From: Cyanophora paradoxa CCMP329 | Taxonomy: Eukaryota; Plantae; Glaucophyta | Reading direction: 5' to 3' | DNA length: 64,000 nucleotides | Assembly (NCBI GenBank): GCA_004431415.1 | Contig: QPMI01000167.1 | Location: forward strand, 161,222 to 225,221 | Shown: one piece after another, positions 25,594 to 57,173 of the stretch | Layout of the letters: every line of letters begins with the position of its first letter | How positions within the stretch are numbered: the first letter of the stretch is position 1 | Position numbers and translations under genes: made by a program | The notes under the pieces: generated by a model | The model's input: the letters and a program-made list of their open reading frames with translations, nothing else | What the model was told of the DNA's origin: nothing | The model's database searches: none

Positions 25594-25778
25594 AAGTCCT
25601 TGACATTATATCGATGTATGGGGCTTCTTCAGCCCGTGTCCGCGGCATGCCTCGAGCACTAGCTTCTAGGTTCCTCTCGTCGTGTGGGCGTGTTCCTCTC
25701 GAAACGGCAGACTATCCTCGTTCCGCGTAGACAAATGATGTCTGCTGCGTAGACACGTGATGTTCTTATGTAGATATC

Positions 25779-25890
25779 TGCATTTCAGACGCGACCAACG
25801 ACATCTGGACTAGCCTAGTAGCTGTTTGACTAGCAGCAAGTCGCCGGTCGACTAGGCACGTCGACTTCGAGTTCGAAATCGAAACCGAGC
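25779..25890 (+). repeat. Short dispersed repeat, inverted copy at ~46730-46875
   Basis: tgcatttcagac.cgaccaacgacatctggactagcctagtagc...gccggtcga is shared with the reverse complement of 46795-46875. Confidence 0.8.
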
Positions 25891-43048: not shown

Positions 43049-46000
43049 ATGGCCGACGGCGCTGGCGCAGCTAGGCCGGTGAAGCGCGCAAAGACGGAAA
43101 CCCCCGAAATGACGCAACTAGGGCAGAACCCTTTCGCGCTCCTCGGTGCGCTCGCGCCGCGGACACTGGCGGCGGTCGCGCTCTCTTCGTACGCGTGCGT
43201 GTAGCTGATGCTAGCTTGGCTCCTCCCCCGTCAGCGAACGCGGATGACGAGGTCGAGGAGGGCGAGACCCGGGAGGAGCCGACAGCGGCCGCCGACGGCT
43301 TCCAGGCGCGTGTGATGCCGCGCACGCGCGTTGGAACGCTGCGTACGACCGCAACTGAGTCGCACGGCCGGGCTCACGTCGATCGTGAGCGCAGGTGCCC
43401 AAGGAGCAGAAGCGAAAGCAGAAGAAGCTGCAGCGACAGGTGCAGGCTGGCAAAGCATCTTCGCAGCAGATCCGCCAAGTCCTGGGCTCCTCCGTGCGTC
43501 TGCTCGGGGGAGGGAGCTCGCCCCTCGGGCCCTCGCCGAGCTCCCGGCAGGCGCGGGCGGAGGTCGAGGTGAAGAAGTCAGAGATCCGGGGCCAGCTGAA
43601 GATGCGGGCGAGTGAGGCAGCGCGGGGCGCGCGGGGAGCAAGGCTGACGGGGCGGCAGAGCGCGACGGACGTGGTGATGTTCGTGCTGACCTCGCCGGGG
43701 CACCCGGAGAGCGCGCGCTTCAACCCCGTCATCCCCAACTGGCTCGTAATCAAGGTGCGGGGGCGGGGCGGGGCGGGCGGGGCGGGCAGGTGTATGACGG
43801 GGGCGGGAGGGCAGAACAAGCCGCTGGTGGAGCGGGTGGTGGTGCTGCTGGCCCCCGGCCTCGACGAGGCGACCTTCCGGGCGCACGCCGCCTGCTTGCC
43901 CAACCTCGCCCGCATCTTCCCCGCCGCCGGGCCCAACGGCCCCGTCCCCATGCGCGCCCCGGGCACCCGTGCCCGCATCTCCTCCCCCGCCCATGCCCTC
44001 ATCATGTACCCCGTCAAGAAGCGCTCCAAGCGCGACGCCGCCCGCGCCGCCGCCGCTGCCGCCGGCGAGGAGGCCACCGGCGAGGCGGCGTGGGGCCCCG
44101 AGCAGCTCCTTGCGACGCGCCAGCAGGTGCAGCCGCCGGGCGCCGCTCTCGCGCCCCGCCGACGCGCACCGGCAGCTCGAGGAGAACAACTTCCCCCTCT
44201 TCCCCCTCCCCGGCGCCCCGCAGGCCACACCGCACCACACCGACGCCGCCCCTCCCGACCCCGGCGGCGCCGCTGCCCCCAAGGTCCCGCCCGCCAGCCG
44301 CCCTGGGCCGCGCTGCGGCGAGGAGCATGCGCAGGCGGAGCTGCGGGGCTACGTGCAGACGCGGCGCGGGGCTGCGGGGCCGGAGGCGGGCGGCGGCGGG
44401 GCGCGGCTGCTGGCCCTTGACTGCGAGATGGCGCGCGGGGCTGGGTGGGGCGTGTGCGGGCTGGGGGCCTGAGGGGCGGGGCCAGGTGACGACGGGGAGG
44501 GCCTGGCGCTGGCGCGCTGGACGCTCGTGGACGAGGCCGGCCGCGTCGTCGCCGACGAGCTCGTCAAGGCCCGCCCCGCCGGCCCCCGCCCCGCCGCCCC
44601 CGCCCGACGCGGCGCAGCCGGCGGAGCCGGTGACGGACTACAACACGCGGTGGAGCGGGATCACGGCGGAGATGCTCCGGGGGGTGACGCGGACGCTGGG
44701 GGAGGCGCGGGAGGCCTTCCTGGCGCACGTTGACGCCGCCACCATCCTCGTCGGCCACTCCCTCGAGAACGACCTGCACGCCCTCAAGGCCCGCCCCCCG
44801 CGCCCCCCGCCCGCGCCCCCGGGCCGAGGCGGCGGCAGGTCGTGCACGAGCGCGTCGTCGACACCTCGCTCCTCTTCGAGCACCCGCGCGGCCCGCCCTA
44901 CAAGGCACGCCCCGAGTCCAGCCGCCCTGCCCCGCCCCGCCGGGCGCCGCGTGACGGCGGGCAGTCGGCGCTGCGGCACCTGGCCTCGAAGTACCTCGAG
45001 ATCTCCATCCAGGACGGCACCGCGTGCGCCGGGCCGCCGCCGCGCGCGCGGGGCGGCGGGGCATGAGGGGGCGTGCGGGCAGGGGCCATGACAGCGCGGA
45101 GGACGCGAGGGCGGCGATGCGCCTCGTGAAGCTCAAGCTCGAGAAGGGCGCCCGCTTCGGCGAAATGGGCCAGGCCCGCCCTCCCGGCCCCTCCCGGCCC
45201 GGCCCCGGCCGAGGCGCGTGCAGGAGGAGATGGAGAGCGTGTTCCGGCTGGTGGCGGCGCAGGGGCGCGCCGTCTCCATGTACGAGCGCCCCGCCGCGAT
45301 GCGCATGTGGGTCTCGGGCACCGCTGTCAGCGCCGTCCCCTGCCACTCCGACGCCGAGGCCCGCCCGCCCCGCCCCGCCCCGCCCCGCCCCGTCCCGTCG
45401 GAGGCTTTGCCGCGAGCGGGGCGCAGGTGGCGTCGCGGCTGGCGCGGGACCTGCGGGGCGCCGGGGAGGCGGGGGAGGGGGCGGGGGTGCGGGGCCCGCA
45501 CCTCTGCTGGGCCCACCTGCAGGACCTCAACACCTTCCTCAACGGTGCGCGGCGGGGCGGGGTGGGGTTCGGCGGGGACGGGGGCCTGAGGGGGGCAGAG
45601 AGCGCGCGGACGGTGGACGTGGGGGACGGGGCGACGCTGGACGGCCTCGTCGAGGGCCGCCCCGGCTGCCACGGCCGCCTGCCCCCCGCCCGCCCCGCCG
45701 GCCCCGGCCCCACCGCCCCCGAGGCCGCCACGCCCGAGGTGCTCGCCGAGGCGGAGGGGCAGCTCGCCGTGCAGCTCGAGCTGCTCGACGCCCGCGTCGG
45801 CGAGGTCCACGCCGCCCTGCCCCCCAACGCCCTCCTCCTCCTCTGCACCGGCCACGGCAACATGGGCATCGTCTCCAGGTCCGCACGCCGCCCCCCGTCC
45901 CCCCCTGCCCCTTCCGGACGCCCCGCAGGCTCGCGGGGCACAAGGCGCAGTGCGAAAAGGGGCGGGCGGGGGACGAAGCGGGGGCCGTACTCGAGTGGAC

Positions 46001-46126
46001 CGAGCGGCACGAGCAGGCGCGCGCTGCCCGGCGCGGTGCGGGGCGGGCGGCCTGACGCTCCCGCAGGCGCTGGCGGCGGCAAATCAGCGCGCCGGCAACG
46101 CCCTCTGCTTCGTCGCCGTCAAGTGA
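43049..46126 (+). CDS. DEDDh RNA exonuclease (REXO1/REXO5/SDN5-like)
   Basis: LALDCEM|V, PVTDYNTRWSGIT, ILVGHSLENDLHALK, VVDTSLLF, GHDSAEDARAAMRLVKLKL, C-terminal LPPNALLLLCTGHG...LCFVAVK*. Confidence 0.92.
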
Positions 46127-46130
46127 CTCC

Positions 46131-46373
46131 CGCACGCAGTAACCAGCGGCGAGGGGCCCAGGGAAGCCGGCGAGCGGCGCGCACCGGGACGACAGTCTTG
46201 AGGAGCTGGGCCCCTCTCGCGTGTGCCCTCGCTTCCATTCGCGTCGATCTTCCAGCGGCGGGGCTCGCGAAATAGTGCAGCGAGCGCCGGCTTATAAGCC
46301 TTGATGCGTTCCTGCAGAGCTTCAATTAGGAACTGCGTGCATTCAGCGACTGCGCGACCCGCGACCCGCAACC
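46131..46373 (+). pseudogene. Internally deleted duplicate remnant of the 52.7-54.3 kb PsbQ-like locus
   Basis: 46151-46296 matches 52686-52836 (upstream region). 46299-46361 matches 54093-54155 (last exon and 3' UTR). The copy then jumps to 54235-54252. Confidence 0.8.
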
Positions 46374-47173
46374 GAGCTGCAGCGGCCTGCTTGGATCGAA
46401 AGTTGAGGTTTGATAATACAATGAGTACGATCCACTGGGCCAAGGTTTGATATATATACACGCGATGCGGCTCCACCTTACGCACCTTCGGGAGCGCCGG
46501 CGGGGGAGGCCCGCCGGCCGGTGCTCGCGATCGTTGCCAAGTTGGGGTTCCGGCCCCCTCGGGCAGCATTCCTCTCCCTTAGCGGCCAGCCTGGCAGCTG
46601 GCAGTCCGTGGCGGGAACGGGCGAGCCTCCGGCCCGGCGGGCACGGCCCGCACCTTGATCTTTTGATCTTAATCCCGTAGATCTAGAGCAAGCCTTGAAG
46701 TAGACGTAGGTTTTGATCTCGAGCTTCGGTATTCGATTTCGATCTCCGAGGCTCGACGTCACTAGTACTTGCCACACTTGAGCCCTTACGATTTCGACCG
46801 GCGGCCCACTGCTAGCCAAACAGCTACTAGGGCTACTAGGCTAGTCCAGATGTCGTTGGTCGTGTCTGAAATGCAGTATGCGCTGCTGTGCCGCAGTGCC
46901 ACTGGGCCACTGCTCAGAGTCGGCCCCACGGCCGGCCGGGCCCGGCCCCGCGGGCCGGGCGCCGCGGCCGTGACCCCGCGGGGCCTCGAATCAACAAGCC
47001 CTGGGAGTTGTGCAGGATTTCGGGATCGAGTTACAAGCCTTAAAGCTCCCATTCTCTCTTGGCAGTGAACATGTATTTACAGCGAGGCAATAGAGGACGG
47101 CCCGGCGGGCGGATAAAACTGCGTGCCGATCGATCTGGCACTGGCCGTCGAAACAAAAGCTGCGGCCGGCGCA

Positions 47174-49219
47174 TTACTGGCCATGGGCTTCGTTCTCGAA
47201 GACGGCGGCGGCGCCCATGCCGGTGCCGATGCACTGCGGGGCGGTCGGGAGGGGCGAAGGGGGCGGCGGGGCGGCGGGGGCGGGACCATGGAGACGACGC
47301 CGGTGCGGGCGGCGGGGCCGCGGCGCTTGAGCTCGTGGAGGAGGGAGACGACGAGGCGGGAGCCCGTGTTGCCCAGCGGGTGGCCCAGCGCGATGGCGCC
47401 CCCGTTGGGGTTCACCTGCGGGGCGTGAGGCGGGCCGGGGGCCGGGGGCGCGGGGCGGGCGCCTTGGCCTTGTCGAGGGCGAGCTTGTCGACGCAGTAGA
47501 GGGCCTGGCTCGCGAAGGCCTCGTTGATCTCGTACACGTCCACCTCCTGCAACGACGCCAGCCCCGCCTTCGCCACCGCCGCCGGGATCGCGTACGCCGG
47601 CCCGATCCCCTGCCGCGCCCCGCGCCTCGGACCCCGAGCGGCGGGGGCGCGACGCGGGGCGGGGACCATGACGGAGGGGTCGACGCCGACGACGGCGAAG
47701 GAGCGGAGCGAGGCGAGCGGCGCCATCCCGAGCTCCCGCGCCTGCGCGCCCCCGTCCGCCCCCGGGCGCCAGCCGCTCCGCGCCGCCCGCGCACCCGCTT
47801 GCGGGTCATGAGGAGCACGGCAGATGCGCCGTCGGAGACCTGGCTCGCGTTCCCGCTGCCCGGCGCCCGCGGTGGGCGGGGCCGGCGGGGCGCGGGGGGC
47901 GGGCGGGGGCGGGGGCACCGGTGGTGGAGCCGTCCTTGGCGAAGGCGGGCTTGAGCTTGGCGAGCTGCTCGAGGGTGGTGCCGGGGCGGACGCCGTCGTC
48001 CTTGTCGCAGGTGACGGCGACCGACTCCTTGGAGACGGGGTCGTTCACGAACGTCTCCACCGCCACCGTCTCCTCCTTGAAGCGCCCCGCTGCGCCCGCC
48101 TCACGCCCCGGCCCCACAGCCCCGCCCCGCCCCGCCCCGCCCCTCGCGCCGGGGCGCACCGGCGAGGGCCGCGGCGGCGCGGCGGTGCGACTCGGCGGCG
48201 AAGGCGTCCTGCGCCTCCCGGCTGACCCCGAAGCTGCCGCCCCGCGCGTCACGCCCCGCGGCCCCGCGCTCGGGGCGGGGGCGGGGGCGGGGCACCGCTT
48301 GGCGACGTTCTCGGAGGTCTGGCCCATGGTCATGTAGCAGGAGCGGACCGAGCCCTTGAGCGCCGACGGGTTCACCTGCCGCGCCCCTGAGGCGGCGCCC
48401 CGCGGCCGGCCCCCGGGCGGCGCACGCGGACGCCCGAGAAGCTCATGTCGTCGTTCGACATCGACTCGACGCCGCCGGCGATGCCCACCTGCGCCCCGCT
48501 CGCCCCGCCCGCCCCGCCCGGGGCGCGCGGGCGGGCAAGGCGGCGGGCGGCGGGCCTGGTACTGGCCGGAGCGGATGGCGGCGGCGACGTCGGCGATGGC
48601 CTGGAGGCCCGACGAGCAGAGGCGGTTCACGGTCTTGACGGGGACCTGCGCGGCGCTCGCCGGCGGGGCGGGGCGGGGCGCCGGCGGGGCGGGGCGGGGC
48701 GGACGGTCTCGGGGAGGCCGGCGAGCATGGCGGCGACGCGGGCGTTGAGGGCCCCCACGTCGCTCTTCGGCAGCACGCAGCCCACCGCCACGTCCCCCAC
48801 CTGCCGCCCTTAGCGCACCGCCCGCACACCCAGCCCGGACCGGGCCGGCGGGGCACCTCCTTCGGGTCGAGGCCGCGGGCGCGGGCGTCCTCGACAAGGC
48901 GGCGCAGCACGGCCGCCAGCAGGTCGTCCGCGGCCGTGTCCTGCGCCCCCTCAGCGCCCCGCCGGCCCCGCGGCCGGCCCCACGCCGCTCGCCTTGAGGA
49001 GGCCGCGGCGGGCGCGGGTGACGGGGGTGCGGAGGGCGGCGACGACGACGATGTCCTCGCACCCGCGGCTCCCCAGCGCCCCGTACATCCCCGCCCCGCA
49101 GCTCCCCGCCCCGCACCCCGCCTTGCCCGTAGCCCGCCCGCCCCCGCCCCCGCCGGCGCCGAGGCGGCCGAGACGACGCTCACGGGGAGCGGCTCGAGGC
49201 CCGTCAGGGGGCGGTTGGC
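47174..49219 (-). CDS. 3-ketoacyl-CoA thiolase (peroxisomal type); apparently the C-terminal moiety of a fusion with the upstream MFP
   Basis: [91 protein letters not shown]. Confidence 0.93.
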
Positions 49220-52200
49220 CTGCGGGGCAGTGGGCGCGCGGCGGGGCGGGGCGGGGGGGGGAAACGGGGCGGGCGGACGCCGGCGGCGTCGAGGAGGAAG
49301 GGGCTCGGGGCGAAGAGGCGCGAGCCGAAGCGGCGCTCGTACTCGCGCAGCTTCTCCACCACGAACTGCCCCGGCGTCAGCGCCCCGCCGCCCCGGGCGC
49401 GGCGCGCCGCCGACCTTGGCGCCCAGCAGGGAGGCCCACTTGAGGACGCCACCCCTGCGGGGGAGGGTGAGGGCCGGGCGGGGCGCGGGGCGGGGCCGGG
49501 GCCGGGGGTGCGGGCTTGGCCGGGGGGAAGCCCATGCCCATGACGGAGGCGACGTCGATGTCCGAGGGGCGGACGACCATCCCCTCGGCGAGCACCCGGC
49601 ACGCCTCGTTCACCACCGGCAGCAGGCACACCAGCGCCACCTCCTCCCCGCTCAGCTCCGGCGCCTGCCCGCCCCGCCCCGCCTCGGCGCCCCGAGCGGG
49701 GGGCGGGGCTGGAGGGGGCGGGGCGGGCGGGCCTGCGGGGCGGGGTGGCCGGCGTCGCGGCGGGAGCGGTCGAGGATGGGCTCGATGGCGGCGCTGTCCT
49801 CGCTCGCCTGGCGCGCCTCGTGGCGGTAGTAGCCGGCCCCCGTCTTCTCCCCGAGCCGGTTCGAGTCGATCATGTACTTGATCTGCGCGCCGTCGGCCCC
49901 GCGCGCAGCGGCCGGCGGGGCGGGGCGGGGCGGGGTGGGGGGGCCGGGCCTGCGTGGACTCGTAGATGCGGTCGCCGTAGGCGGCCTTGATCATGCCGCC
50001 GACGTGGCCCTGGACGTCGAGCCCGACGAGGTCCCCCATGCGGAAGGGGCCCATCGGCATCCCGAACCGCACCACCGCCCGGTCCACCTCGTACGGGCTC
50101 ATCCCCCGGTCCGCCAGCAGCGCCTGCGCCCCGCTCGGGCCAGCCGGCGGCGGCGGGCCGGCGGGGGGCGAGGCGGGGCGCGGACGGCGGCCATGGGGTA
50201 GGGGAAGAAGATGCGGTTGACGGTGAAGCCGACGCAGTTGCCGACGACGACGGCCGTCTTCCTGCCGGCCGCGTCAGCCCCGCCGGGGCCGCCGGGGGCG
50301 GGGCGGGGCGCGCTTGATCTGGCGGCAGAGGGCGAGGGCGGCGGCGACGGCGTCGGGCCCGCAGGCGGCCGGCCGCACGACCTCCACGAGGGGCATCACG
50401 TGCGCCGGGCTGAAGAAGTGCACGCCCAGCATCCGCCCCTTCGCCTCCGCCCTGCACCCCCGCGTCGGGCCGCGCCCCGCCAGCAGGGCCGGCGGGGCGG
50501 GGGCGGGGCGGACGGCAGCTCGGCGGAGATGGCGTCGATGTCGATTGTGGAGGTGTTGGTCGCTGCGGGGCGTTGGGGGCCGGCGCGCAGGAGGGGGGAC
50601 GGGGGGGTCACCGAGGACGCAGCGCGGGGAGCAGGCGGCGAGGAGGTCGGCGAACACGCGGCGCTTGAGGGGCAGGCTCTCGATGACGGCCTCGATGGCG
50701 ATGTCCACCTCGTCGAAGCCGGCGAGGTCCAGCTGCGGCCGCACCCGCCCCAGCATCGCGTCGTGCTCCTCCTGCGTGATCTTCCGCTGCCGCAGCCGGC
50801 TCCCCAGGTTCGCTGCCCCGCCCCTCAGGTGCGCAGCGCGGGGGCGTGGGACGGGGCGGGGCGAGGGCAGGGGCGGGCCCTGGATGCGTTTCATGCCGGC
50901 GTCGAGGAACTTCTGGTCGACCTCCTTGAGGCGCACCTCGATCCCGTGCATCGCCAGCGCCGTCGCGATCCCTGCGGCGCCCCCTCACGCCCGCCCCGCC
51001 CGCCCCGCCGCAGCCCCCGCCGCACCCGAGCCCATAAGGCCCCCGCCGATGACGCCGGCGGAGCGCACGGGGCGACCCGAGGGGCTCACCCCCGGCACCT
51101 GCGTGGGGCGAGGGGTCGAGGCGGGGCGGGGCCGGGGGGCGGGGCGGGGCCGGGGGGCGGGGCGGGGCGGGCGGGCCTTGGCGGCGGCGCGCTGGGCGAA
51201 GAAGAAGTGGACGAGGGCGCGTGAGACGGGCCCCTTGACGAGCTCGACGAAGAGGTCCGCCTCGCGCCGCAGCCCGGCCACGCCGCCCTTCTCATACCCC
51301 GCCTGCACCGCCTCGATGCACGCCAGCGGCTGCGGCATGCCCCCGGCCCGCTTCGCCGCCTCCTTCCGCGCGAACGAGAAGACCTGCGCCCCGCTCGCCC
51401 CGGGCGAAGGGGGGGGGAGGGGGGGGGGTAGGCGCCGCGCCTGCTTCGCCACGACAGCCATCTCGAGCCGCTCCGAGCTGCAGCCGGGTCAGCGGGCGGT
51501 CGCCCCCGGCTGGGCGGGGCGGGGGCGGGCCTCTCGATCCAGCGGACGCGCTTGCGCTTGCCGTCGGCGAGCTCGAGGGCGACGCGCTTGGCGAGGGGCA
51601 GGAGAGCGGCGGCGTCGGGGGCGACCTCGTCGACGAGGCCGCTCTTCGCCGCCTCCGCCGCCTTCACCATCTCCGACAGCTGCGGCCCCGTCACCCCGCC
51701 CCCGCCCTCCCCGCCCCGCCCCGCGGCCCGCGCACCAGCATCATCGTGAGGCCCTTGCGCAGGCCAACCACGCGCGGCAGCCGTTGGGTCCCTGCGGCGA
51801 GCTCGTCTAACGGCAGAGGGGGGCGGGGCCAGGGCACCGCCGAAGCCCGGGATGAAGCCGAGCTTGAGCTCAGGGAGGCCCATCGTCGCCCTCGCCGTGC
51901 ACACGCGCGCGCTGCACCCCTGCGCCCACGCTTCACGGGCCGGCGCTCGAGCCAGCCCCCCCCGGCCGCGCTTCCCGCGCACCAGCGACAGCTCGAGGCC
52001 GCCCCCGAGGCACATCCCTGCCGCCAGTGAGCGCGGCGCGAGCAATGCCGAGCCCGCACAATCTTACCGTCAATAGCAGATACAGAAGGTTTGGGACCGG
52101 CTGCGTGGCGGGGCTGAGCACTCTAGCGAAAACCGCGCGCGGGGTTTGCACCTTCGACGGCGAGCATAATCTTGCTCCCGTTCTCGATGCCGGCGCGCAT

Positions 52201-52520
52201 CTCGGCCTCTGCGCTCTACTAAGCAAATTTCGCGCGCTTGGTGACCTCGCGGGGGCACCGGATATCTTGCCGTCCTGGAAAGCCTGCATGAACGACACGT
52301 CCGCGCCGCCCGAGAACGTGCCGCCCGCGCCGGTCACCACAATGGCGCGTGCGGTGGAGTCCGCCACAGCGCGATTGAAATTCTCGAAGAGTGCGCGCTG
52401 GACCTCGGCGCTGAGCGCGTTGATCGGCGGGTTGTTGATTGTGACGATGGCGACGCCATCCTCGACGCGGTAGGACACGGGCGCTTGATTCGCAGCCGCA
52501 CCCTGTGGGGATGCGGGCAT
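49220..52520 (-). CDS. Beta-oxidation multifunctional protein (enoyl-CoA hydratase/isomerase + 3-hydroxyacyl-CoA dehydrogenase; MFP2/AIM1-type)
   Basis: DGVAIVTINNPPINALS, FSGGAD, LGGGLELS, GLPELKLGFIPGFGGTQRLPR, GVIGGGLMGSG, EAVIE, TNTSTI, GVHFFSPAHVMPLVE, GNCVGFTVNRIF, FGMPMGPFRMGDLVGLDV, FAPSPFL. Confidence 0.94.
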
Positions 52521-52917
52521 CAGAGCGGCGTGACACACAGCGATCGGCCGCGGATACTGCGCGGATGCGCTGGCGTCTGATCTCACGAACGTTCCCACCA
52601 GCGCGTACGTGGGGGTCGCGCGTACTACCGCAAGCTAGCGGGTATGATGCGTGGATCGGCGCGCACGCGCCGGGAAACCGGCGCCGAGGGGGGCCAGGGA
52701 AGCCGGCGAGCGGCGCGCACCGGGACGACAGTCTTGAGGAGCTGGGCCCCTCTCGCGTGTGCCCTCGCTTCCATTCGCGTCGATCTTCCGGCGGCGGGGC
52801 TCGCGAAATATATAGTGCAGCGAGCGCCGGCTTATATCGATATCGGCCCCCCCCCCCCCCCCCCCCCTCCCCCTCCCGGAGCGGGTACTGTGGCTAGCGG
52901 TTTCCCTCGCCGAGTCG

Positions 52918-54123
52918 ATGGCAGCATTCGCCCAGCCCGCAGCTGCGTTCGATGCAAAGCGCTCTCGGTTTGTCCAGGGCGAGCTCCCGGTTTGTCCGAT
53001 GAGCCCGTGCACGCCGTCTCGAGCGGCGCGCCGTCCCGCTCTCGGCGAGCGGCGCCGTGTCTCGTTCTCAGTTCGCTGCGAGGCTGCGCCGTCGGGCAGC
53101 TCGCTGCCTCGCCGGGCGGCGCTGGTTCGGGCTGGTGCGGTGGCCGCTTGGTCCTGCTTTATGGTAATGGAAGCAGCCTGCAAATCACATTAAAGCTGCC
53201 ATTACTAAAGCAGCCGCGATTCTGCAGCTGCAGAGCTCAGCCGCGCATGCCGCGGATCTGGCGGAGCTCTTGGATACTGTGCGGTCGGCGCGCGCGGCTC
53301 TGGCCTCGACCGACAAACTGATCGAGACCGCGAAATGGGACAGTGTTAGAACGGTGAGCGCGCGTACAGCCGCGTACGCCGTAGCGCTTGAAATTTGGCG
53401 CAGCCTGTGTACTAATACAATTCCGACCGCACGCGCAGGTGATCGCCCGGCAGCCGGTCCTCGGGCTCAAGAAGGTGGGCACCGGGCCACGTCATCGCCC
53501 TCAGCCCTTGACAGTCCGGCAGACCATGCAGGCGGCGGTCGAATTCCTCGAGGGCGACGCGCGCGACGATGCAACTGATGCGCTCTACGAAGCTCTCGAC
53601 GACATCGGCTTCCTCGGTGCGCGGCGCTGTTGACTTCTCGTAACCGCTCTGATTTCATGGGTTTCAGATGATTTCGTCTATACCAGTACGTTATCTATAG
53701 AGAGAGATAGAGATCTAGATCGCGATGAGCCGCGGTGCCCCGCCCCGCCCCCTCCGCCTCCTCTTCCGCTGCACTCGCCGCCTCCTCCTCTGCCCCCGCC
53801 TCCCGGGCCCGTTGAACTCGCATTGGCCTGGAGGCCGCCCAAGGATTCCCGCCCCGCCTTCCCATGGCCAGCCGACAGTCGCCAAGTAGATCTGCGCTTC
53901 TCATCGCGTCGCACTTCTCTCATACTTCCTATTCTGATCCCTTGAAAGATGTTTTCGTGGGCGAGGAGCGCCAGGTGCTGGGGACGAAACTGGATTACAG
54001 CACGCCAATGCGGTACCGGCAGCTCGCACTGGAGGTCCGTTGGTTGGCCCGATCACGCATGAGATGCGCAAGTCAGTAACCAGCGCGCAGCACCTTGATG
54101 CGTTCCTGCAGAGCTTCAATTAG
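52918..54123 (+). CDS. Thylakoid-lumen protein with bipartite (Phe transit + twin-Arg) presequence, PsbQ-like helical protein
   Basis: MAAFAQP...VRCEAA, SLPRRAALVRAGAVAAW..SAACAA (Tat signal, AxA), LIETAKWDSVRT, and last exon LALE|HLDAFLQSFN*. Confidence 0.65.
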
Positions 54124-54395
54124 GAACTGCGTGCATTCAGCTGCTGCGCGACCCGAAATGTCATCTTGAATGACCCCGGCCCGGCCCTCCCATTCGCGCG
54201 TCGGCCCTTGCACTGCAGTCACCCGCGCCCCTACGACCCGCGACCCGCAACCCATAACCGCGTCCATTGAGAGACAGCGGGAAGGGATAGAGGGACGGCG
54301 ACAACGGCCGGAGCTGCGCGAAGCCCGGACTCACGGGAAGCGCGAACGGTGACAACGGGAAGTGTTGACTGTTGGGGAGGCCACGACGGCCGGAG

Positions 54396-57173
54396 CTACG
54401 CGAAGGGGTCATCGCCGAAGCCGGCGTTCGAGGCGGGTGCGGCGGGAGCGGGGCCCGCCTCCCCGTCCGCGAACGGGTCGGCCCCGAACGGGTCCTCCCC
54501 CGCGCCCGCCGGCGGCGGCGTCGGGGCCGTCCGCGGCGACGGCGCCGTCTCCTCCTCCGCCGGCGCCGGGGGCGGAGCCGGCGCGGGCGCCGCCTTCGGC
54601 TCGGCTGGCTTGGAGGCGGCCTTGTCGGGGGTTGCCTTTTTGGGGGCCTGCTGGGGGGAGAGGGGCGGCGTCTTCGCGGCCGGCTCCTTCTTGGCGGCGG
54701 CGGCGGCCGACGCGTGCTTCTCCGCTTCCTCGATTTTCTTGTCCACCTCCCCGCTCACGGCCTCCTGCGCAGGTGTTTGTCGGCGCGGGGGCGCTGCCGG
54801 TGGGCTGCGCGCACGTATTCGGTCTTGCACCAGCCGAAGAACTGGGCGGCGGTGGTGAGGATTTGCTGCATGGAGGCGTTGTCGGCCTGGGCCTTGAGGA
54901 GGCGCTGGTTGTCGCGCTCCGCCATCTTGACGATCTCCTGCACCTCCTCCGTGATCTGCACCCGCGTCACGCGTGCCCCCGCCGCCGGCGCGCGCCCCGA
55001 CGCGGGTGCGGGCCTTCACGAGCGAGCCCTTGCTCTCCTCGACGGCCTTCTCCGCCTTCTCGCGCTCGGCTGCCAGCTGCGCGTAGATGAACTTGAACTG
55101 CTCCAGCGTTGCCTTCTGCTCCGCAATGTCCCGCTCCGCTTGCTCCCGCTCCGCGCTGTTCCGCGACATCTCCTCCTGCGCCTGCGCCCCGTCCGCCCGC
55201 GTCGCGCCCCGCCCCGCGCCCGCCCCGCGCCCGCCCGCGCACCTGCTTGCACTTGATATCGAAGTCGGTGAGCTCCTCGTGCAGCCGCCGCACTTCCTTC
55301 TGGATCTCCTCGGCCTGCGCGGGGTCCGTCGGGGGCGCGGGGTCGGTCGGGGGCGCGGGGCAGGCGCCCGCTCGGGGGCACCTGTCGGCGCGTCTCCTGC
55401 AGCTCCTTGTCGTTCTCTTCCCACCGCTTCTTCATCACCTCCCACTGCGAGGTTGGGCGGTCGGGGGATGGGGGCGGGGCGCGGGGCGGGCCGGGGCGGG
55501 CCTGGCTCTCGAGCATGGTGCGCTGCATGTCAAGGGAGATCTTGCTCTCCCGCACCGCGCTCGACGCGTCCGCCTGCTTCGTCAGCATTGCCTGTCCCGA
55601 CTCCACCTGCACCGAGCCTCTCAGCCGAGCCCGGGCGCCTGGCGGTGTCCCATGCGCGGACCTGGGATTTGAGCTGCGTGAGGTGCGGGTCGCTCTTCGC
55701 GTCTGGCTTCGCCGGCCACTGGAAGTCCAGCGGCGGCGGAATCTAACGCCGCCCTCGCGTCGGCGGGCGCCCATCAGCGAAGGAACACCAGAAGGGGCTC
55801 ACCGACGCAGCACCGGGCGGGCCGCCCATGCTCATCTGCTGCACCGCGCCGGAGAGGTGATCGGCGCCGTGCGGCTGGGCCATGGCCGGACTGCGGGACG
55901 TGAGCGGCGCGAAGACGGGGCGGCAGTCGCAGGGGGGCGCACGCTCCGAAGGCGCCGGGTGCGCCACCGATAACGGGGATGGTCGGGAGTTGAATTGCGG
56001 GCTTCGGGGGCTGCGGCGCGGCCATGCCCATCTGGGGCATGGGCGGGGGCATCTGCATGCCGGGCGCCATGGGCATGCCCATGTACGTCTGCTGGGCCGC
56101 CTTGACAAGGAGGTGCGGCGGCAGAGCAGCCGGCAGCTCGCCGCCCGTCCGCTTGTAGTTAACGAGGTGCATTGCAATGCAGAATTCGTCCTTGTCCAGC
56201 TTTCGGTCCTTGTTCTGATCTGCCAGCACCCTGCGCGCTAGTGAGAGCGCAAGAGGAGAGCGGAGGGCAGCGAAACAAACCAAATCTGAGCGAGGACGTT
56301 CGACGGCAGGTTCGATTTGCCGAAGAACTCTTTCGCCTGCTCGCCCGTCACGAAACCGTCCATGTCAGTGTCCAGCGTTTTGAAGTAGCCCTCGTAGTTC
56401 GCCCGGTCCTGGGGCGTGACAGGGCCTGGCCCGCCGGCAGCACCCTGCAGCATTCATTCTAAGATTGAATTCGACGCGCAGCAGACTGCCGAGAACCGGT
56501 GCGCACCGGGGCCGCGGGCATTCCGGGCATTGAGGGCGCGCCGAAACCGGCCGCGGGTGTCGGTGCGGGGGGCTGGATGCCCTCGAACCTCGGCAAGCTG
56601 GAGCCTGTAACAAGAAAGAGGCAGTTCATGAGAAGCGTGTCACCCAGCTGCTAAGGCAGGGTGCACCGTTCAAGGCGCGCGCCGCTACAGCTGTGAGCGA
56701 CGGGGTGGGCGTTCCCTGCTGAGCGAGAAGGACCAGACGCATCGCGATGTTGAATTCGGCACGCCCGAGCGATGGCTGCCCACCGGAAGCCGCGGCCCAG
56801 ACCTGCGCGAGGAAAAAAACCACCTGCTCAGAACCGAAAACTCAAGCGCCGCGCCTTATTCGCTTTCTGTACCTGCTTGAGAACATCACGGGAGATACCG
56901 GACTTCATCAGGAACTGCGCCTCGGCGCTGCAGCCGCGGAATGTCAGCTGATGGCAGCCACACAAAGCAACGCGACGGGCGCACCCATTGATGCGGCCGT
57001 CGCGGTCCTGGTCAGCCATTTGGAATAGCTGCTCGTAGAACTTGCGCTCCTGCTCAGTCAGCGGCAGGTCGCCTGCGGCCGATGAGGCGAGCCGGGAACG
57101 TGAGCCCGGGCGCGTGGCTCGGCGTTCACGGTGCAGGCGACGCACCTCCGGTCGCAGGCGCATAGGCGCTCAT
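54396..57173 (-). CDS. Eps15-like endocytic adaptor (two EH domains, coiled coil, DPF motifs)
   Basis: LTEQERKFYEQLFQMADQDRDGRING..AEAQFLMKSG; VTPQDRANYEGYFKTLDTDMDGFVTGEQAKEFFGKSNLPSNVLAQIW..DEFCIAMHL; C-terminal DPFGADPF...DDPFA*. Confidence 0.9.

Follow-up and report, generated by a model that had tools for sequence, protein, structure and literature searches.

A predicted single-chain multifunctional protein-thiolase gene in the glaucophyte Cyanophora paradoxa, with fused relatives in red algae and other protists

A three-domain multifunctional protein (MFP) was described in the red algae Cyanidioschyzon merolae (CMR380C) and Porphyridium purpureum by Mori et al. 2016 (PMC4928187) and was given as a red-algal feature. 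The window analyzed here, 64,000 nucleotides of the Cyanophora paradoxa CCMP329 assembly (contig QPMI01000167.1, positions 161,222 to 225,221), carries on its minus strand a gene (52774..47174, numbered within the window) that is very probably a real single-gene fusion of the same kind. It would run from the ATG at 52774 to the stop at 47174 in about 35 exons and encode a predicted protein of ~1,150-1,170 aa for steps 2-4 of fatty-acid beta-oxidation. Judged from its sequence, this protein represents in glaucophytes the orthologue of the red-algal three-domain MFP. A preliminary description of the locus implied that the architecture was novel, which it is not, because Mori et al. had reported it in red algae; the Cyanophora fusion is already in public annotation and is a further instance of the published architecture. 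No report of the fusion beyond red algae was found in the searchable literature, most subscription journals falling outside it. The fusion is also present in glaucophytes (Cyanophora, Gloeochaete) and in unrelated protists.

The gene is intron-rich and lies in DNA of 78-80% GC. Models assembled from coordinates give 21 exons for the MFP half, between the ATG at 52774 and 49279 (728 aa, stop-free), and 13 for the thiolase half, between 49058 and 47174. The halves were described earlier as close together on the same strand, and this was borne out: both are on the minus strand, with 220 nt between the MFP exon end and the start of the thiolase core. The ATG at 52520, taken before as the start codon, was rejected, as it lies inside the first intron, at the 3' end (acceptor 52503). 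All 32 introns end in CAG and 31 of them are 46-78 nt long; donors are GT in 21 and GC in 11. Two of the 11 GC donors in 47174-52774 are preceded by A, not G.

Domains were searched with single exons and with the public protein P0182, and both gave the Pfam order ECH, 3HCDH_N, 3HCDH, Thiolase_N, Thiolase_C. The EukProt C. paradoxa models tig00000692_g3274.t2 and.t1 (P0182, P0393) are fused and match the window exon by exon. Public model g3274 joins hydratase, dehydrogenase, and thiolase in 1,141 aa, with exons at 52774..47174. The Cyanophora assembly is PacBio-based and has many short introns, and its authors caution that gene models need curation (PMC6704402). The catalytic residues of MFE-1 and plant MFP are present (for the crotonase domain, two Glu; for the dehydrogenase, GxGxxG, Ser, and His-Glu), as are those of KAT2, ACAA1, and POT1 in the thiolase (Cys, NEAF Asn, GHP His, and the C-terminal Cys).

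Relatives were collected by a word search with a thiolase-frame reference, which led to P0002 (3HCDH + thiolase), then to its cluster, and then to a long-protein search with the thiolase part. The P0002 cluster includes a 1,139-aa fused protein on five intron-free contigs of 3.6-3.9 kb. In all, 81 of the retrieved proteins (some redundant) contain both halves, always with the MFP first (81/81). Fused red-algal members came from Porphyridium, Timspurckia, Compsopogon, Chondrus, Gracilaria, Agarophyton, Hildenbrandia, and Galdieria; outside red algae they came from Cyanophora, Gloeochaete, Heterolobosea BB2, Andalucia godoyi, Balamuthia mandrillaris, and further protists. The Gloeochaete orthologue is one open reading frame (ORF) on 3.6-kb intron-free transcript contigs (P0398, which falls in one 90% cluster with the named P0399, was assigned to Gloeochaete on that ground). 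Continuous mRNA spanning the junction was seen in Gloeochaete and one metatranscriptome relative only. Together with the public model, the Gloeochaete transcript and the 81 homologues uphold the earlier claim that three beta-oxidation steps sit in one chain. Among 80 bacterial loci, no fused ORF was found, and in 24 of the 80 the MFP and thiolase genes were adjacent in the same order. A representative-protein search returned nothing >807 aa among the best 150 matches and was uninformative on fusions.

Several observations weigh against an intact, peroxisomal single chain. The thiolase reading frame is broken by one base near 47855 in this assembly. The second junction intron requires a non-CAG acceptor, whereas all 32 others have CAG. 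The nonapeptide in exon 1 fails the strict consensus of the peroxisomal targeting signal type 2 (PTS2) and fits the relaxed R-x-x5-Q-L. Green fluorescent protein fused to the terminal peptides of the C. merolae protein was not peroxisomal (PMC4928187). AlphaFold, run on the Gloeochaete chain, gives no relative placement of the halves (monomer; predicted template modeling score 0.62; linker predicted local distance difference test, pLDDT, <50).

At the junction, the gap has stops (49206, 49182) in one frame only, that entered when the intron 49278..49220 is retained. The acceptor at 49220, with a score of 10.5, is in the usual range for the 31 short introns of the gene. The frame entered from the GT donor at 49278 has exon-like codons (log-likelihood ratio, LLR, +4.2, then +10.5 for 49183-49160) and aligns with the Gloeochaete linker; these scores are indicative, as this gene alone served to train the codon model. 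The linker first preferred, with a GC-AG intron from donor 49280, was rejected for its wrong-frame codon usage (LLR -19.0 over 12 codons) and its mismatch to the Gloeochaete linker. The 'decayed PTS2' proposed in the linker sits in that probably untranslated frame and is without the His/Gln-Leu end of the motif. The second option given at that time, GT 49278 plus a GTGAG intron at 49183, is the path of the public model. An arrangement as two genes, with the MFP ending in a retained intron at 49204 and the thiolase starting at the in-frame ATG at 49088, is extremely improbable: a normal-looking intron must be retained, the resulting tail is Pro-rich with intron-like codons (LLR -22.1), there is no space for a terminator and a promoter, neither product has a targeting signal, and the fused orthologues are left unexplained.

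Past the linker exon, a further intron is needed to return to the thiolase frame. Across the junction, 980 in-frame splice paths were enumerated. The path with intron 49157..49102 scores the same as the public 49183..49122 (13.8), and the second half of the linker is unsettled because neither the AAG nor the GAG acceptor is typical. A rival reading is a polyprotein, imported jointly as one chain and cut in the linker by a peroxisomal protease of the DEG15/TYSND1 type, after which MFP and thiolase would act as distinct subunits. Mammalian MFP-2 and SCPx are processed by such cleavage and offer a precedent. One top-scoring path, 49157..49102 (56 nt), yields Ala-Ser-Ala-Cys-x-Ala-Gly, similar to the Cys motif at which the protein is cleaved ahead of the core in plant KAT (PMC7710942 describes both this motif and DEG15). 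However, this path was chosen post hoc from the 980 and needs the GAG acceptor, the Gloeochaete linker is without Cys, and the motif is in 0/81 annotated fused linkers versus 45/115 standalone thiolases; the polyprotein is therefore considered unlikely.

The break in the thiolase frame was not noticed in the preliminary description. The exon 48089..47919 ends in phase 1, and the exon at 47855 needs phase 2. No GT/GC-AG splice rescue was found except one that deletes a conserved loop, and the public model avoids the break by dropping this loop, which is conserved in all fused relatives. All four exons past the break keep conserved sequence and the catalytic His/Cys, and the site is at a G run; for these reasons the frameshift is probably an assembly deletion. 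Alternatively, the frameshift would be real, the Cyanophora thiolase half would be decaying as a remnant, and MFP activity alone would survive, for which the phase break and the loss of the loop in its sole rescue would speak. This is very unlikely given the preserved downstream exons and the position of the break in a region of ~80% GC in a PacBio assembly.

The exon 1 nonapeptide is degenerate in Cyanophora and has the same position as the PTS2-like signals of its relatives, which are R-x-x5-H-L nonapeptides at the N-termini of Gloeochaete, Andalucia, and Balamuthia and a near match in BB2. The Cyanophora C-terminus, HGQ, is no type 1 signal (PTS1). The absence of PTS1 at the thiolase end thus stood as described before; the targeting puzzle built on it did not, because it arose from missing the first exon. 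A C-terminal tripeptide of the PTS1 type is found in 60 of the 81 fused chains, including nearly all named red algae, while most named non-red members have an N-terminal PTS2-like signal. Neither signal was found in the c10013 group and P0121. Red algae are without PEX7, and the PTS2-versus-PTS1 transition has been termed unexplained (PMC7710942); the PEX7 absence fits a PTS2-to-PTS1 switch, and the contrast among the fused proteins follows the red-algal PEX7 loss. The chain could be real and work in the cytosol instead, a minor possibility: PTS1 is absent from the Cyanophora protein and its PTS2 is degenerate, the C. merolae terminal peptides do not target peroxisomes, and the C. merolae protein is absent from a peroxisome proteome (PMC4928187). 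Against it, both halves are from peroxisomal families, relatives retain PTS2 or PTS1, and PTS1 is present in the PEX7-less red algae.

Two unfused protist MFPs near discoban fused proteins, P0257 (L092) and P0256 (L093/L094), stop directly behind the dehydrogenase and have no PTS1. The transcript P0257 has a true stop and an N-terminal PTS2-like signal, the form to be expected had a fused gene shed its thiolase.

The best solved relatives are AtMFP2 (2wtb) for the MFP half and AtKAT2 (2c7y) for the thiolase half; no fused chain was found in the PDB sequence set. The single domains of the Gloeochaete chain are modeled well by AlphaFold (pLDDT 82.8), and the first 720 residues match 2wtb with a template modeling score of 0.94. 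On the single-chain reading, enoyl-CoA would be hydrated by the hydratase domain, 3-hydroxyacyl-CoA oxidized with NAD+ by the dehydrogenase domain, and 3-ketoacyl-CoA cleaved with CoA by the thiolase domain. The chain would act after acyl-CoA oxidase in peroxisomes, which it may enter by the N-terminal PTS2-type signal (degenerate in Cyanophora) or by piggy-backing. Since thiolases of this type are dimers, the working form is likely a homodimer held through the thiolase domains, a covalent equivalent of the bacterial alpha2-beta2 FadAB complex with fixed 1:1 stoichiometry and possibly channeling. No enzymology of the fused chain was found in the searchable literature; a natural one-chain enzyme makes channeling between peroxisomal MFP and thiolase directly testable.

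All trees were quick searches on chosen subsets, in which Porphyridium and Galdieria took the place of CMR380C. Gloeochaete and Cyanophora group together in both half-trees (Shimodaira-Hasegawa-like approximate likelihood ratio test, SH-aLRT, 93-99). In the thiolase tree, the eukaryotic peroxisomal-type thiolases including Cyanophora form one clade (98), and most fused halves, with red algae and Cyanophora, are together (SH-aLRT 87-93); at the base, the positions of Balamuthia and one relative are not resolved, and the fused group excludes green KAT. The MFP tree unites all fused halves with the green MFPs in one plant-type clade (100), where green MFP has as neighbors the fused proteins of red algae and the c10013 group (SH-aLRT 94-97). 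In approximately unbiased (AU) tests, the alternative to green MFP nested among fused proteins was not rejected (p = 0.23), nor was a single clade of all fused thiolases (p = 0.35). Green KAT as a simple fission product was set aside on its separate placement in the trees, with AU only borderline (p = 0.052 and 0.086). Intron positions common to Cyanophora and Balamuthia numbered 3 against 1.4 expected (p = 0.15).

The trees thus suggest, without significance, a single old fusion from which green plants lost the thiolase half; alternatively, the fusion may have arisen repeatedly or been passed laterally between protists. As a tentative history, the single-chain MFP-thiolase could be an ancient eukaryotic gene, present in the Archaeplastida ancestor and common to Discoba and Amoebozoa. 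Import would have been by PTS2 first, with PTS1 in red algae at PEX7 loss, and plant MFP2/AIM1 would have arisen by loss of the thiolase half, its job being taken by a separate ACAA1-like paralogue. The fusion spans three eukaryotic supergroups and may be much older than thought, and its wider distribution would change the account of plant MFP origin.

Some other proteins were placed by the same trees. The unfused MFPs P0354 (L090, 5001-7136) and P0279 branch within the plant-type MFP clade or at its base. The contig of one of them is gene-dense and prokaryote-like, and no thiolase adjoins the MFP there; their lineage is a possible donor, or a transfer is possible. P0140, P0141, P0149, and P0165 (L091) are a fused eukaryote group that the thiolase trees place near red algae; no PTS1 or PTS2 is evident in them.

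Table 1. Features of the Cyanophora paradoxa fused gene, in window coordinates.
Feature	Coordinates	Strand	Basis
TATA-like boxes, putative promoter	52807..52836	-	Sequence, upstream of start codon; function inferred
Exon 1: 18 aa from the start codon, nonapeptide PTS2-like but degenerate; GT donor 52720	52721..52774	-	
Small putative exon (end 52599 in t2, 52587 in t1)	52587..52634	-	Public models only
Enoyl-CoA hydratase/isomerase domain exons, both catalytic Glu	51531..52502	-	Pfam, residue check
Segment between hydratase exons and dehydrogenase C-terminal exons	50262..51098	-	Pfam, residue check
Dehydrogenase C-terminal domain exons, two 3HCDH stretches, stop-free end	49279..50261	-	Pfam
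First junction intron, GT..CAG, 59 nt	49220..49278	-	Public model, splice scores; frame fits Gloeochaete linker
Linker exon, certain to 49184, coding-like to ~49160	49160..49219	-	Codon LLR +4.2 and +10.5
Second junction intron: either 49183..49122 (AAG acceptor, as in public model) or 49157..49102 (GAG acceptor), in frame in each case	49102..49183	-	
3-Ketoacyl-CoA thiolase, 13 exons, Cys-Asn-His-Cys set, stop 47176..47174, without PTS1	47174..49058	-	
One-base frameshift at a G run where thiolase exon 9 starts; assembly deletion probable	47852..47856	-	

Downstream of the gene, 46141-46361 is a composite copy of 161 nt 94% identical to 52676-52836 (promoter, exon 1, donor) and 63 nt 97% identical to 54093-54155, as if the intervening 1.26 kb had been removed; it resembles captured or filler DNA. 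At 46794-46876, in a low-GC stretch that contains palindromic GC-rich runs, 83 nt match 25778-25851 in the opposite orientation at 82%, a possible small repeat element. The upstream neighbor (54396-56283, minus strand) has an EH domain and coiled-coil-like exons and is EPS15/intersectin-like. The downstream neighbor (43395-46130, plus strand) is DEDDh RNA exonuclease-like by motifs, with no Pfam match in the two pieces scanned.

Among described systems, bacterial FadB-FadA and the mitochondrial trifunctional protein have the same three activities and folds, but these are on separate alpha and beta chains, whereas the Cyanophora model is a single chain whose MFP half is 31-39% identical to theirs. 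Plant MFP2/AIM1 and KAT2/PED1 share the catalytic residues and provide the best PDB match for each half. Green plants differ in having two genes, with PTS1 on the MFP and PTS2 on the KAT, and plant KAT is apart from the fused thiolases in trees. The red-algal three-domain MFP combines ECH with HACDH and KAT in one chain, in the same order and at similar length, with identities of 41-44% in the MFP half and 52-56% in the thiolase half. The Cyanophora protein is unlike it in its glaucophyte host, many introns, PTS2-like N-terminal exon, longer linker, and lack of PTS1, the red-algal members ending in SRL/ARL/AKL/SKL-type signals.

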